Assembly (NCBI GenBank): GCA_904063045.1
Contig: CAJFCJ010000011.1
Location: 1 to 64,000, forward strand
Reading direction: 5' to 3'
Origin: Dimorphilus gyrociliatus
Taxonomy: Eukaryota > Animalia > Annelida
DNA: 64,000 nucleotides
In this document: one piece after another, positions 12,286 to 53,561 of the stretch
Layout: each line of letters starts with the position of its first letter
How positions within the stretch are numbered: position 1 is the first letter of the stretch
Translations under genes and position numbers: made by a program
The notes under the pieces: model-generated
Database searches by the model: none
The model's input: only the letters and a program-made list of their open reading frames with translations
Told to the model about the DNA's origin: nothing

Positions 12286-14191
12286 GATTTCTTCTCTCTA
12301 TCAGAATGTTCTTCTGAATGAGAAAACAAATGAAAAGTGCTAATCTCTGTACTCTTTTCATTTATATTACTCTATGATACTACTCAAACGACTTTAACCG
12401 CTTGCCTAGATAGCATAATGAAATTAATCCTAGTATAATTATACCTCTCTAATATAACTTCTTATACGAAAATATCTTCTTTTCCGATAAGTTCCAAATT
12501 AAACTGAACTAGAAAACCTTTATAAATAAAAATGGGGTGGGAAGTGAAGAAAAGAAAACAAATTCCGAAAATGAGGCTTGGAAGGTTATTCATCTAACCA
12601 ACCCGGATGAATAGGCTTTTTTATTTACCTGGTACAGAGTGAGCAAATCCCAAAATATAATCGCATAACACATAAAAATATGAGAAAAGGAAGAAAGATC
12701 TTTACTCTTTTTTTATCTCTTCCAGTTCAATCTTATATCGATCAGAATAGTAAGAGAACAAAGAGAAAACGACAAATTGAATTGGCTACACTGTCTCTTC
12801 GTCTTTTCGTTTCCTTCTATCAGTCTATCTATCTTCTAAAGTTAGGATTGATCCTTTTTACTACGTAACTTACACCATTTCTTTATGTTTCTAGCAAAAT
12901 AATAAAAACGACAAAAAGTGGCAATATAAAGTAAATTTTATCCAGCGACCAGAGGCGTATATGGAAGAAAGAGAATAAATGCCGAGTACAAGCTAAACAC
13001 TTGCCCCTGCAGCCTTATCCAGTGTATTATTTATAGGTTGTAGGGGGATGGGGTTGTTATAGGCCTACATTTTTTCAGCTTTACAGTTGCTCGAGCGATT
13101 TAGTGAAGGGAATAGAGGTGTTTTTTACCTACTTTTTTCCCCTAGACTTCCGGACTTTTGAAATTCATACTACACTATATTTACCTATACTGTTATTATT
13201 TATGTATATATAGGCAGAAAGAGCGAGAGAGTAAAAGATATATATGTATATATATATAGGAAATTACTTAAAAAATAGTGAGAAATTCTAAAAATTGGGA
13301 TATATGCTGTACATATCTTCTATTATCACTATAGACGTTTTTTTAATTAAGATAATAGGAATGGTTTTTTACCTTATATAGCTGTTTGTATCAGCTGGTA
13401 TTTAAATTAATTCCGTATGCTACTATTCTTCTTCCCTAATGTTCCTTCTTTCTTCTGGCAAGCTTCAGAATGTACATAATCGACGTGATTTATTACGTTA
13501 TTGAGTTTACAAGACAGGCCATTGGTACAAAATTATAATAGGATTAGAGTTATTTCCTATTGAAGAACTTTATCAAACTTATGTACATAACAGTTCTTGG
13601 TACAAAAACAGAGGAATTAAATTATTAATAAGTTAAATAAGGAATTACTAATTATTACTATTACAATAAAACTATTAAATAATTATTCTATTTCGTACTA
13701 TAAATCATTGGTTTTGTTCAAACTTCGATATGTTTATCTTCGTATTTTCAATAAAGCTAAGACTTTCTTTTCTTGTTAATTTATTATAAATGTTTAAACT
13801 CTTTAACTTATTCGTTTATTATTAATTAATTGTGTTATCTTTTTTCTTTTATACAAATATTGAATTTCCTCTTGATTTTACCCTTACTAACCCTGTAAAA
13901 CTCCTTTTGTATACTCCTTTAAACCATCTTTTAGCTTATCTGCTCTTGTTTACTCTAAATTAGATCCAAGAGTGCATTCTTCAAACAAATACCATAATTC
14001 TTTCCGATACTAAACAGATCCTTAATTAATTAAACCGGTATATAGTGGCGACATCTCTTAACAATTGTTTTTGTTATCTTTAAATTTATCTTCAGCATTG
14101 CAGTATTGCCTACAAAACTAGAAATATCCTTTTATTATATGACGTCATAGTCATTTAAATACCATGATAAGGTTTTAAGTAAATAAAAAAA

Positions 14192-46752: not shown

Positions 46753-47061
46753 TTAAATTTTAGCTGGGAAAGAACCGTTATCTCTTTGTTCATCCCACTT
46801 GGCTGTCCATTCATTAGGGCAGAGTGATTGATAAACTCTCTTGAAATATTCACATGGTTCATAGTCTTCGCCCTTGATTTTGTGACAACGATGGTAGTCC
46901 ACGTAATTTTGCCAGCAATTCCTTGTTAGAAAAATAGTTCATTTGAATAAAAGAGAAACTTTTTTACAATAATTTTCATATCCTTACTTAGTTTGGTTCT
47001 GGTTGGGGAATCGGGCGTCAAATGGAGCTGTCTTTATTTCAATAGCCTCGGAGTCCGACAT
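46753..47061 (-). CDS. COX6B1: Cytochrome c oxidase subunit 6B
   Basis: [80 protein letters not shown]; one CDS intron; probable 5'UTR intron up to about 47438. Confidence 0.97.
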
Positions 47062-48728
47062 CTGATAATATATAAGTATATAGTATGGTTGTCAAGTAAT
47101 TAATTTTCTACCAATGTGCATTTGTAGGTCGTTGGCTTTGCCCATCAAAAATGCCGATAAAACAATGTCAAAACATTTACTCGTAGCCCTTAGATACTAG
47201 TTTACATTTTGGATTTCCTAAAATAATTGCTTATATCAAGAGCCCAAAATGAAAATTGTAATTTTTGAAGCAACAACCTTTTGTCAGAAACAAAAATGCT
47301 TTAAAGGTATTATCGCTCACGGTCAATGATATTCCTATTAGTTCTCTTTAAAATCACCCTATCTCTTTAAACATTATACCTCTCATAAAAGATAAGGCAA
47401 TTATTGATTAGATTAATGAAACCCAACGGGAAACTTACCCTTAAAAATAGATAAATTTCGTTCTAATTTTTCTCCGCAAAACCAAGTATGAAGGTGAACG
47501 ATAGGTGGCGCTCTACACTTCGTAGTTAAAAGATAAAACGCAGAGCAAAAAAAAAAATAGTACGAAAACTCTTTCGAATTTTCTAAATTTTCAAAAGAAG
47601 TTCGATATTTACAGCTTAGTTTGATTTAGAAAGTTAATTAAAAGTATTAAAATAATATACTATTGGTTTTATATATGCGATGAATAAATGTTTATATTAA
47701 TTCTTGTCTATTATATACAAAACCAGGGTGTTCCTTAGCTTGAAAAATGCTCATTTAATCTTAACAATATACAACAGAATCATATTAAAGTATCATTCAT
47801 CTTATAATTTTCCGCTATTCCCCTCTCTCTATCTTCTCTCTGTCTTCTTTCTTCCTCCTATTTTTTTTCGCTTAGAAATTCATATAGAGAGATGTATTTA
47901 TCCCTCTTTCCCGTTATGCTCTTATCATATTCGCAACTAGACTATATTATATAACGTAATTTACGTATTATTTAATTTAATTAACATATTTTTGCTTTTT
48001 TTCCGATAATTTTAACTATTATAGTATCTTACTTTCTATTTTAGACGCTTTCGACGTTTACAAGAACCTATTAATAACCTGATAAGACACACGGTATATA
48101 TCGCAGTAAATTTACGTCGTAGTTTGGACAAAGTTAAACTTTTGTCTTCAAACTATGTTAAAGGCTATGATGACAAACTGTCAAGCTAATATTTGTCTAA
48201 AATTTTATGATATTACTCAGATGAATAACTTCAATCCGTGATTTATAGTCTTAGAATTTCGCAATGTTTATGGAAATTTCCATTTTAAATATTATTATTT
48301 CTATTTGATCTCTTACTAATTAAAACTTAAAATAATGATAAAAAGTTTATGGTAAACGATAAATTGACAAAAGAGGAAACAATTCTATCTATAACAAATT
48401 CACCCGTTAGTCTGCATTTAATTAATTCTTAATTTACCACATAAGTTGAAGATTGACATTGTACATATTGCAAGAAGCTGATAAGCCTATACACTTTTTT
48501 ATTATGATTATTATACATTTCAAACCATTTAAGGAAATTAAAGATGTTGCTATATAAAAACGGATATTGAATTTTGTCTTGTGAACATTACAGAATAAGA
48601 TAAATGCATCTAAATACCTTTAACAAGATATATTTTAATTAAGTTAATCATTTATGGGAAGATTGATCAGCTCCCTCTAGTCTAGTTCGAGACTTCAAAC
48701 TTTTCCGACTTTGGAGAAAGAGTGAAAC

Positions 48729-51700
48729 ATGGAAATGAACGGCTTAATACTCATCTTGTTTATCTATACAGCATTATCATTAACTACTAGCAGATTTATT
48801 AAAGAAGCTGGTAAGAGATCATTTATATTACAATTAAAACAAATTACGTAGTTTTATATGTAAGAAAACCTTTATAAATTAGTTACTATTTTACATTGTT
48901 TTATTACTTCCGCCCTTCTATTCGTGTATTTTTTTATACATATATATATATATAATAATAATTATGTCGATATAAAAAAATTACAATTATTCATTAAATG
49001 CGCGTGTATTCACTTATAACGATTTTATCGAGCTAATGACGTACTTTCTCCGATAATCCGTATGTTAAGAAAGGCAATACAGTGTTAAGTAAAAGGTTAT
49101 TTTTATTTCATCATTTCTCTCAATATCTCTTATGTATTATGTTTAATAATATGAAAAAAATTAGCTATCTCTTTGTTCTTTAATTATAAAATCGAATTGA
49201 CTTATACGACTTAATAGCTCTCTCTATTTTTAACTCTTCGCTTCGTCAAGAACTTCTATTTCATTTCCGTTAAATTGTTATTCTTCCGCGAAGAATCGAC
49301 TTATTTTTCTTCTTTTGGTGGCAATCTTTCCCTTTTTAGATTATGTTGTTTTTTTTTTTTACTTCGATTTCTTAATAAAAAACCGATATGGTTCTTCGAG
49401 AGATGGCACCACTTTGGAAAGAGCGTTTCGAGTCAGGCAGAAGTTATTTAACTAGAAAGCGCCTGCATTGAAAAGAGGCTTATTTTTAGCGCTTAGCACA
49501 GACTAGTATAGCTATACAGTAAAGAATAAAATGGCTCAAAAAAAGAGCGCTTCGTTTATGGAAAAACTGCAAAAATTCACAAGACCAAGTCAAAGTTCCA
49601 AGAAAAAGCAACCTCAAACAGCACCTCCTAAGAGTAAAGAACCCGTTAAGGTCATTAATAGAATTCTTCAAACGCCTGTCAGGAAGAAAGAAGAAGAAAG
49701 ACCGAAGTTTGGTGTTGAAACGCCCAAAGTTCGGCCAAATGAGAAAACTAACATTTTTACGATGCCTGCTTCTGCTGCCAATACTCGTCATCCTCCCCCT
49801 CCTCCCCCTCTGCACCCACCACCATCATTTCAAAGGTTAGAAACTCCAAAACAACACGAGATAGATGAGGATGAGTTTAGATTGAAAGCTTTAATTGCCG
49901 AAAGTATTTTACACGGAAAGCATGATGGTCTCTCAGAAGAACAAATAAAGGAGTACCAAGGTAAAGAAAAATATTCCGTAGTCCTATATAGAATAGCAGG
50001 TATTACCTACACACTTATGAACAGAAGCGTTTGCTGTATTCGATAAGGACCAAGATGGGATAATAACGAAAGAAGAATTAGGTCACGTACTGTTTGCAAT
50101 AGGTCAGAGACCAACTATGAAGCAAATAGAACACGTACTGCAAAGGGTTAGTGGAGGTGCACCCGGTGTAACTTTTGATCAATTTGTAGCCCTAATGAAC
50201 CAAGGCTCAGATGATTATGATGGAGAGCTAAGGCAAGTTTTTAGTGTTTTCGATTTAAATTCGGATGGAGTATTAAGCACAGACGAGGTTTATCACGTAA
50301 TGGCCCAATTAAGTGATAAAATTAAATATGAAGAAGTTAAAGAAATGGTTCAAGAAGCTGACAGTAACGGTGATGGATATGTCGATTTTAGCGAATTCAA
50401 AACCATACTTCAAGCTAAATAAAAACATTTTTTTCCACACTAGTCGAATTATATAGCCACAGTAAGAAAAAAATAAGAATAATAAACAATAAATGAGAGA
50501 ATACTCTAGTTTAAAATAAGAAAAAAACCTTCCTTCCGGTTCCTGTTTTTAGAACTGGGGAAAAAAAAACGTTGTAATAAAAACAAAACGACAATTTCCT
50601 TTTTTGGAGATAATTGTAATATATTTATTGTTAAATATAATAACGTTCTAAAGGAATATCATGATCATTTATTAACTTATTCTCAAGATGTTAAATTTTC
50701 ATTCTTTTATCATTCCTAATCAAGTTCAATCCTTATTCAACTAATCTTTGATATCCCCGTAATATCTCCAACTATAAAATAGGTATTCAGCTATTTTAGC
50801 TATAGTAATAAATAATTTGTATATAAAAGTGGAATTTAACCAAAACAAAATTAGTCCTATATACTTAACGTTCTTGCTCGACTTGTTATACTTTAGGCCT
50901 AATATGAGTCATATTTAGGTAGCACATAGCAAACTTTTTGAAGCATTTTTGGGTTTTCAAAGTCACATGACGACCCTTATGTTATAGTTAGCCGTACGAC
51001 ACTATATAAAGCCGGTAAAACTACAAACTGCTTATTAAGAGACACTAGAGTATCTTTGCAAAAAATTACCACTTTGGCATCCGAAAAAATAAGTAAATAA
51101 CTAACAAAACATGGACCGCAAAGATGGTAGTAATCATAAGGAGACAAGTGAAATCTGGAAACAAAATGAAAAACAGACTGATCAGGAGAAATCGACTGCA
51201 TTCGGTAATATGCTTGAGAGAAGCCTAAATGCAACTTATTTATCAATGGGTCTTACTCTCGGTGGTGAATTAGGCCTATTTGATAGAATTTTAGAGCAAG
51301 ATAGTTTAACTTGCCAAGAACTTGCAGAGAAGAGTCAAACTAAGCAGTGTTTTGTAAATGAGTGGCTAGGTTTGATGGTATCATCGGGAATTATTGACTG
51401 TATTCCAGATTCTGACCCAGAGAGATATTTCATTGCCGATTATAAGAAATCATCACTTCAAGGACAGTATAGCTGGTTGGCCTGGGCAAAAGAATTGTCA
51501 GGTTACTTTAAGACATATGACACTGTTTCCCAGTGTTTCAAATTGAGCGGACCTAGAGGAGTTGATAGAAATCAATTGGATGCATTCTATGATTTTTACG
51601 AAAATATGGACAAGGAATCGGCCGACAAATGGTCGGAAATGAAATCAACTTTTGCCCAAATTCCAGGTAATAGTCCGAAAATGACTTAATTAACATTTTA

Positions 51701-53561
51701 ATTAATAAATAACCGATATTTGTTTATTTACCTGCTTTTTTTCTTTAGGTCTAATTCAAAATTTTGAAAACGGTATTGAAGCTTTGGACGTTGGTTGTGG
51801 CGGAGGCAATATTTTTATATCTTTGGCTTTACAATTCCCAAAATCTACTTTTTACGGAGTTGAAATATCTGAAAAAGCTCTTCAAGTAGCTAGAAAGAAT
51901 GCAGAGAATTGCGGTGTAAAAAATATTAAATTTATAGTTGCCGACGCCACTAATTTACCAAAGGAATGGACAGGAAAATTTAAATATGTTCACACATCTC
52001 ACGTTCATCACGATTCGTCTAGACCGAGAAAAGTGACATCAGAAATCTTTCGGGTATTAGCTAGTAAAGGGTCTTTGAGTATATTTGAAAATGGTACAAA
52101 TGGTAGACACGGAGATAAATCTTCTGATCCCAATTACCTTATGGGTTACTTTATATCAACTTTCGCTTGCGTACCAAATGCAACATACGATGAAAAAGCT
52201 GAGGAACCTCTAGGTGTTTACGTTTCGAAGAGAACTATCATAAAAATGATGGAAGATTGCGGCTTTTCAGCAAGTGTCGTCGGAGGAGAGGATAAGTCAA
52301 TTGAATCTCCAGTACATAATCACGGATCAACTATTTTACACTATCATGGATTGAAGAATTAATAGTTTTTGTCCTATTGAAGAGCTATAATTGTCTTTCT
52401 TAACATATATTTGTTTGTCACATACTTAGGGTTAATAATACAGCATTCCAAAACATTTCTTAGGTGTACTCCAAAACTTTAAGTCAAAAACATTAACTTT
52501 ACCTTCTTATAATATTGCTATTTCTCTTAGTGAAAAGTTCGCTACACATGAATATTCCATGCCACTTGTTTGGAAGAAAGAATCAAACAATAGTATGGAA
52601 GGAGTTTGAGAATAATGAATATACAGATATTGTCAATATGGAAAGGTTGGAATTCCTTTCGAATAATAAAACATTAAGGATATATGACGTTAATCTAATG
52701 GACCATAATCGGTGTTTCTTCTGTTCGTACAAAGATTCGCCATCTGCTCATGAATGTTCTAAATGCATCTACGTTGGTCTTTTTGGTCCTATGACTTGGA
52801 TAAGAAAATACAAGGAAACTTTATTGGTGAAAGATATAGGATCCAATTTCAGATTAAAGTGTCCCACGATCGATATTAAAGATAAGCGCAAAGTTTGTGT
52901 ATCGTGGTATTTTAATGACAAACTATTAAAGGCAAATCGAAAGGGTATCGTCAAACAATTTAAAGGTAGAGTAAGAATTAGGCGAAATGGTTTATTCTTT
53001 AAAAGAATCTCAGAGGAAATAAATGGTCAATTTAAATGTAAAGCTGTGGATAAAATTGAAAGAGTAAGATCCGTTAATGTATTTAATATAATAGTTCCAG
53101 AGAGACTTGATAAGAAACCATTTTTTGATTATGTTAGTAATAATGTAACAGTTTCTGTTGGTGAAACTGTTAATTTGGAAATCAGTGTCGAATCAACATT
53201 ACATCCACTAATATTATGGTTTCACAATCCCAAATCGAATAAATATTCAATCGAAAACGCTTTCAAAATGAACAACATGGAAGAGAGACATCCTCAACAA
53301 CATATCATTGAGAATGTTACTCAAAAAGATGCCGGTGTTTATGTTATTACTGCTTCAAATTATTTTGGTACATCAGTGGCAAAAATATTTGTTGACGTCA
53401 TTGATGTTGGAAAAAACGTTGGTCAATACAGTGCTCGAAAAAGTGAAGGTTGCCAAATCAAGTCAATCTCAATATTGCTGTTAAGTCTCCTATCGACTAT
53501 TTCTATTAACTTGAATATTCGTCCATATATAATAACAATTGCCGAAAAAGTTGTTCAATAA
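48729..53561 (+). CDS. FGFRL1/nou-darake-like three-Ig membrane protein (signal-peptide exon 48729-48810 plus exon 52531-53561)
   Basis: Exon 1 MEMNGLILILFIYTALSLTTSRFIKEA with phase-1 donor g|gtaaga; exon 2 acceptor tttctcttag| is phase 1. Three Ig domains, the third resembling FGFRL1 D3 (ERLDKKPFF...NVTVSVGETVNL...PLILW...DAGVYVITASNYFG), then a hydrophobic C-terminal stretch and no kinase domain. The Ig exon is well supported; the exon linkage is inferred. Confidence 0.7.
49531..50422 (+). CDS. Calmodulin-like EF-hand protein with a long basic/Pro-rich N-terminal extension
   Basis: Exons 49531-49960 and 50025-50422; [55 protein letters not shown]; EF-hand 2 is degenerate. Confidence 0.9.
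51111..52362 (+). CDS. SAM-dependent methyltransferase, Rv2258c-like (wHTH plus class I MTase)
   Basis: Exons 51111-51666 and 51749-52362; LSMGLTLGGELGLFD...ELAEKS...VNEWLGLMVSSGII, LDVGCGGG, FYGVEIS, FIVADA, HVHHD. Confidence 0.88.

Follow-up and report, generated by a model that had tools for sequence, protein, structure and literature searches.

Two complete same-strand genes within a putative first intron of a kinase-less, FGFR-related immunoglobulin gene in the annelid Dimorphilus gyrociliatus

The window analyzed in this work (64 kb, positions 1 to 64,000 of contig CAJFCJ010000011.1) is AT-rich (about 30-34% GC) and belongs to the 77.9-Mb assembly of the annelid Dimorphilus gyrociliatus. 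The median intron of this species is 66 bp and the gene models behind its public annotation were obtained with AUGUSTUS, Exonerate, PASA and EVM (PMC7854359). Between positions 48729 and 53561 of the window, a large exon encoding three immunoglobulin (Ig) domains is preceded by a small exon that is a candidate for its missing 5′ part and, between these two exons, by complete genes for an EF-hand protein and a class I S-adenosylmethionine (SAM) methyltransferase. The features of the locus are the following:

48729-48810, plus strand: candidate first coding exon of the Ig gene, with a signal-peptide-like stretch, about 6 further residues and a phase-1 donor
48811-52530, plus strand: inferred first intron of the Ig gene (3720 nt), predicted from the sequence and holding two complete same-strand genes
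49531-50422, plus strand: EF-hand (calmodulin/CaBP-like) gene, exons 49531-49960 and 50025-50422, 64-nt phase-1 intron
50481-50493, plus strand: two AATAAA signals (50481 and 50488), about 60 nt past the EF-hand stop
51111-52362, plus strand: class I SAM methyltransferase gene, exons 51111-51666 and 51749-52362, 82-nt phase-1 intron
52363-52530, plus strand: 168-bp spacer without ATG, AATAAA or ATTAAA, with one fair non-coding donor (52430) and the acceptor CTATTTCTCTTAG at its end
52531-53561, plus strand: one large exon for three Ig domains with a hydrophobic anchor at the C-terminal end, kinase-less paralogue of an FGFR ectodomain

The three Ig domains (hereafter D1 to D3; I-set, E 3e-21 in Pfam) are followed by a hydrophobic segment (residues 309-329 of the translated exon) and by only 13 further residues. 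No kinase was matched in this exon by Pfam, and its open reading frame (ORF) stops at 53561, after the hydrophobic segment. The exon starts at 52531, directly after CTATTTCTCTTAG. Its frame is closed upstream by a TAA at 52494, and the sole ATG in 52363-52551, at 52548, is in frame and leads into a hydrophilic sequence. AlphaFold models the exon product with modest confidence (mean pLDDT 64, about 80 for D2 and D3); in this model, the opening of D2 and D3, with A and A′ strands, lies about 14-16 residues ahead of the B strand, compared to only five for the part of D1 encoded by the exon. The FGFR paralogue described below has 16 more residues at the start of D1 in the alignment. Since D1 is devoid of its A strand and the exon encodes no signal, an upstream signal-peptide exon is needed. 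Furthermore, disulfide-type Ig domains and conserved glycosylation sites imply that the protein must enter the endoplasmic reticulum (ER). Judged from both sequence and model, the Ig exon is therefore 5′-incomplete.

The Ig gene is under constraint, as an intact orthologue with 59% identity and the same Met-Asn-Ile start position is encoded in a Logan assembly (P0002). The cysteine pairs of D1 and D2 and four N-x-T sites are conserved in this orthologue, and two of the four sites are also found in the FGFR of the worm. The public model of the gene (P0001, in NCBI and UniRef) is a single-exon one of 307 aa that starts at an internal Met (codon at 52638) and has no signal. Apart from the gene itself, a search of 1.8 billion representatives retrieved only the worm FGFR and generic multi-Ig giants, and an alignment-based metagenome scan retrieved no relative.

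The exon 48729-48810, which is not included in the public Ig gene model, starts in a favorable context (A at -3, G at +4) and consists of 27 codons and one base. It ends at 48810 with a phase-1 donor (CTG/GTAAGA, the slash marking the splice site) whose score of 8.0 lies at the 61st percentile of a rough local intron set. Donor scores were calculated with an unsupervised local splice model and all percentiles given here are relative to this rough set; the acceptor scores of the model were not used, since they ranked the certain EF-hand acceptor at the 0th percentile and are therefore unreliable. Phase 1 is the typical phase for signal exons. The encoded peptide has an uncharged hydrophobic core of 14 residues, then T-T-S before R, and would thus be a signal peptide by a rule-of-thumb reading (hydrophobic core, then small residues at -3 and -1 of a likely cleavage site).

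The whole window (both strands, three phases) was scanned for exons of 16-60 codons that begin with ATG, contain a hydrophobic window of 10 residues among their first 30 and end in a GTRAG donor. The scan revealed only three signal-like start exons, all in phase 1: the one at 48729 (with either of two start ATGs), which has the cleanest profile, a weaker candidate at 12680 and a minus-strand candidate. On the plus strand between 44000 and 52530, no other strong start exon combines a signal-like peptide with a phase-1 GTAAG donor. Second-order Markov simulations yielded 1.03 matches with a GTAAG donor per 64-kb strand, all phases pooled, and a chance expectation of about 0.02 for a phase-1 signal-like exon in the 3.8 kb that precede the Ig exon, a figure that is only indicative because the scan thresholds were fixed after the candidate had been seen. 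As a positive control, the signal exon of the FGFR paralogue was the sole match in the sequence that carries it (L002), and another 40 kb contained very few matches. The next-best candidate, 49739-49835, is an alternative-frame ORF over the proline-rich part of the EF-hand gene; it is very hydrophobic, has a weaker phase-1 donor-like sequence (AAG/GTTAGA) and is probably a by-product of CCN/CTN-rich coding sequence. A search of the same genome found neither a paralogue of the exon at 48729 nor a haplotig copy.

Joining 48810 to 52531 keeps the reading frame, with GTG (Val) as junction codon, and leaves a gap of 3720 nt, about 56 times the published median intron. The two genes within this gap are each complete, with an intact ORF from start to stop, a canonical short phase-1 intron and a full Pfam domain. 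The EF-hand gene (EF-hand_1, E 1.8e-25) encodes an N-terminal low-complexity extension of 143 residues. The methyltransferase combines Methyltransf_31 (E 3.8e-25) and HTH_65 (E 1.5e-9), its N-terminal domain corresponding to an Rv2258c-like winged helix. An initial annotation of this locus had already described the orphan ATG exon with its strong phase-1 donor (G/GTAAGA) and an Ig ORF with a good phase-1 acceptor at 52530 but without ATG or signal peptide in the 168-bp spacer. It had also placed between them a 3720-nt gap, about 60 times the local norm, holding two complete same-strand genes, an AATAAA at 50481 and two other phase-1 acceptors (50024 and 51748). We recovered each of these elements, both acceptors being in frame with the 48810 donor, and detected a second AATAAA at 50488.

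The donors 48810, 49960 and 51666 and the acceptors before 50025, 51749 and 52531 are all in phase 1, so that every donor-acceptor pairing is in frame. From the methyltransferase stop (52362) to 52665, inside the Ig coding exon, neither AATAAA nor ATTAAA is present. The methyltransferase gene may end at a variant signal or have a 3′ end that overlaps the Ig exon, and its transcripts may run into this exon.

Of all proteins found, the Ig protein is closest to the ectodomain, with three Ig domains, of a receptor tyrosine kinase encoded by the same genome on C14 (28% identity over 301 residues, E 6e-40, BLASTP). All along its list of PDB matches, this receptor, identical to CAD5121457.1 (P0027), is paired with FGFR1-4, and its match to full-length FGFR1 spans D3 to the kinase. 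By target coverage, structures of FGFR D2-D3 rank with the best fold matches of the Ig protein (Foldseek). The exons of this FGFR gene are:

L002:269-344 (C14 from about 1363167): signal exon, ending with TCG/GTAAGA, phase 1
L002:1436-3765 (C14 to about 1366663): large exon, with its acceptor at L002:1435 and a 1090-nt intron upstream

The Ig gene, as reconstructed here, would share this build (a signal exon, a phase-1 intron and one large exon), and both proteins share three colinear Ig domains and N-x-T sites. The canonical B-F cysteine pair of D3 (53140-53400 in the Ig gene) is absent in both, and the D3 motif H-P-L-x-x-W-F-H-N-P-K is common to the Ig protein, its orthologue P0002 and the worm FGFR. 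However, the Ig protein lacks the transmembrane-plus-kinase part and ends in a hydrophobic anchor and 13 residues, and its inferred first intron has 3720 nt and two genes compared to 1090 nt and none in the FGFR gene. Since the worm FGFR is by far its best relative, the Ig gene looks like a lineage-specific copy of the FGFR ectodomain that lacks the kinase and has been conserved.

The public FGFR model (CAD5121457.1, 712 aa) also starts at an internal Met and omits the signal exon and part of D1; the ORF of the large FGFR exon reaches 63 residues further towards the N-terminal end than this model. The annotation pipeline evidently misses signal exons behind long introns. Therefore, since the public models of both genes start at an internal Met, that of the Ig gene is no evidence against an additional first exon.

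The best available reading of this locus, which we consider fairly probable from sequence comparisons, is that 48729-48810 is spliced to 52531-53561 over the EF-hand and methyltransferase genes. This reading is preferred because the Ig exon is incomplete, the exon at 48729 is the only credible upstream one, the FGFR gene has the same build and the literature excludes trans-splicing and operons for this species. From these observations, we infer the actual splicing of 48810 to 52531. The exon at 48729 would then be the first coding exon, 52531-53561 the body of a two-exon Ig gene, and both complete same-strand genes would be spliced out with the 3720-nt phase-1 intron. The product would be a secreted or membrane-anchored three-Ig protein derived from an FGFR ectodomain, without kinase. 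RNA polymerase would have to read through the 3′ ends of the inner genes, which would use their own promoters; TATA-like boxes lie at 51003 and elsewhere and, like the AATAAA signals, were located by position only.

Several points weigh against this nested arrangement. Only about 16 residues would separate the signal cleavage from the D1 cysteine, compared to 28 in the FGFR (about 11 shorter), which would leave room for a further small exon or for another 5′ exon. Splicing in D. gyrociliatus shows adaptation to short introns (PMC7854359), and the host transcript would have to pass the AATAAA signals at 50481 and 50488 as well as the methyltransferase 3′ end. Word searches for transcript-derived protein fragments, one of them with residues 1-100 encoded by the Ig exon, retrieved none. 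Finally, the fair non-coding donor at 52430 (AGG/GTTAAT, 33rd percentile) could use the 52530 acceptor through a 100-nt intron.

An alternative is a proximal start for the expression of the Ig exon, within the spacer or shortly upstream of it, or its expression as the tail of methyltransferase transcripts; the exon at 48729 would then be a chance ORF or belong elsewhere. A short non-coding first exon could be spliced from 52430 to 52531 and translation could start without signal at Met 52548 or 52638, or the RNA could be untranslated. The single-exon structure of the public Ig model would fit such a proximal start, and the lack of AATAAA and ATTAAA from the methyltransferase stop to 52665 would fit co-transcription. 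However, the public FGFR model is truncated alike although its signal exon is plainly present. Furthermore, a protein without signal would have its disulfide-type Ig domains and its four conserved glycosylation sites exposed to the cytosol, and a D1 devoid of A strand. The gene is also constrained, with its intact orthologue. A proximal or co-transcribed start is thus rather unlikely in our view. A methyltransferase-Ig operon, in which the 52530 acceptor would receive a spliced leader by trans-splicing, would fit two genes 168 bp apart on one strand, with a good acceptor and no canonical poly(A) signal between them. However, analyses of 5′ UTR k-mers and of ATAC/CAGE profiles indicated that spliced leaders and operons are absent in D. 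gyrociliatus and other annelids (PMC7854359), and the 64-kb window contains no match to an Rfam spliced-leader RNA family. A spliced leader would also supply no signal peptide, and we regard this operon as extremely improbable.

The exon at 48729 could also be real but have another partner: the EF-hand gene, the acceptors at 50024 or 51748, or a short secreted peptide encoded within 48811-49530. Open in-frame continuations exist at the exon starts 49520, 50025 and 51749 and the four introns of the locus are in phase 1. In particular, this exon could serve the EF-hand gene as an alternative 5′ exon through the AG at 49518-49519, in frame and 11 nt before the ATG, but the pyrimidine tract of the acceptor at 49519 is poor. 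EF-hand and SAM methyltransferase domains of the kinds encoded here are cytosolic, the continuations in 48811-49530 are low-complexity products of poly-T and AT runs, and the Ig gene would still be left without signal; such a partner therefore seems improbable. Still less probable, to the point of being doubtful altogether, is a shared use of the signal exon as a 5′ module, from which the choice of acceptor would give the Ig protein, an EF-hand protein that is secreted or a secreted fragment of the methyltransferase, or else a mutually exclusive expression of the genes by transcriptional interference. The secreted EF-hand and methyltransferase chimeras are a speculation drawn only from the shared intron phase.

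Upstream of the nested arrangement favored here, about 1.5 kb (47200-48728) is devoid of any convincing ORF on either strand, which is long for so compact a genome; its left flank is a cytochrome oxidase 6B-like gene on the minus strand (46753-47063). This region could be regulatory DNA of the Ig gene.

The Rv2258c-like SAM methyltransferases form an established small family in the worm, with at least four paralogues in the genome (28-39% identity):

C10:1367734-1368267: methyltransferase paralogue
C14:1346580-1346948: methyltransferase paralogue, in a single 403-codon exon
C6:3533260-3533745: methyltransferase paralogue
C12:803715-804215: methyltransferase paralogue

The paralogue on C14 lies 18 kb upstream of the FGFR gene and could have marked an old duplicated block, but it is a single-exon gene and opposite-strand genes lie between them, and this idea was rejected. 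A word search with exon 2 of the methyltransferase gene gave no match.

If the nested arrangement is true, two public models, those of the Ig gene and of the FGFR, would be corrected by addition of their omitted signal exons. The locus would also provide a test case for read-through of internal poly(A) signals and for avoidance of mis-splicing in a genome tuned to 66-bp introns. Furthermore, FGF ligands are reported missing in D. gyrociliatus and its family whereas receptors are kept in the species (PMC7854359). The presence of a conserved kinase-less paralogue of the FGFR ectodomain in an FGF-less animal therefore raises the question of what this ectodomain binds.

The initial annotation had called the Ig gene FGFRL1-like. 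This holds for the architecture, an FGFR-related ectodomain with three Ig domains and no kinase, but the closest relative is the FGFR of the worm itself. FGFRL1, a protein of vertebrates and other animals, has a non-kinase tail of about 100 intracellular residues behind its transmembrane helix. The Ig protein has neither this tail nor an acid box. The FGFRL1 cluster is found among its structural neighbors, with a weak score (TM 0.41), and the searches made here retrieved no FGFRL1 sequence. The IgLON proteins (LSAMP, neurotrimin, NEGR1), which have three Ig domains and a glycosylphosphatidylinositol (GPI) anchor, are its top language-model neighbors and are also among the Foldseek matches. The Ig protein resembles them by its three Ig domains and its C-terminal hydrophobic tail, a putative GPI signal. 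However, it shows no specific sequence relationship with them and its paralogy with the FGFR is much stronger.

As in the known host/nested gene pairs of Drosophila melanogaster (PMC3814207) and of mammals (PMC11694760), complete genes would lie in one intron of a host that must splice across them. The nested genes of Drosophila lie opposite to their host strand in 71% of cases, and 73% of the same-strand ones are single-exon, a pattern read as selection against mis-splicing (PMC3814207). Here, by contrast, the two nested genes contain introns and lie on the strand of the host, in a very compact genome, and the host splice is a predicted one. The layout itself is already known and implies no new mechanism. 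Overall, judging from the Drosophila figures for strand and exon number, two intron-bearing same-strand genes in a single first intron would stand at the uncommon end of this known kind of gene arrangement.

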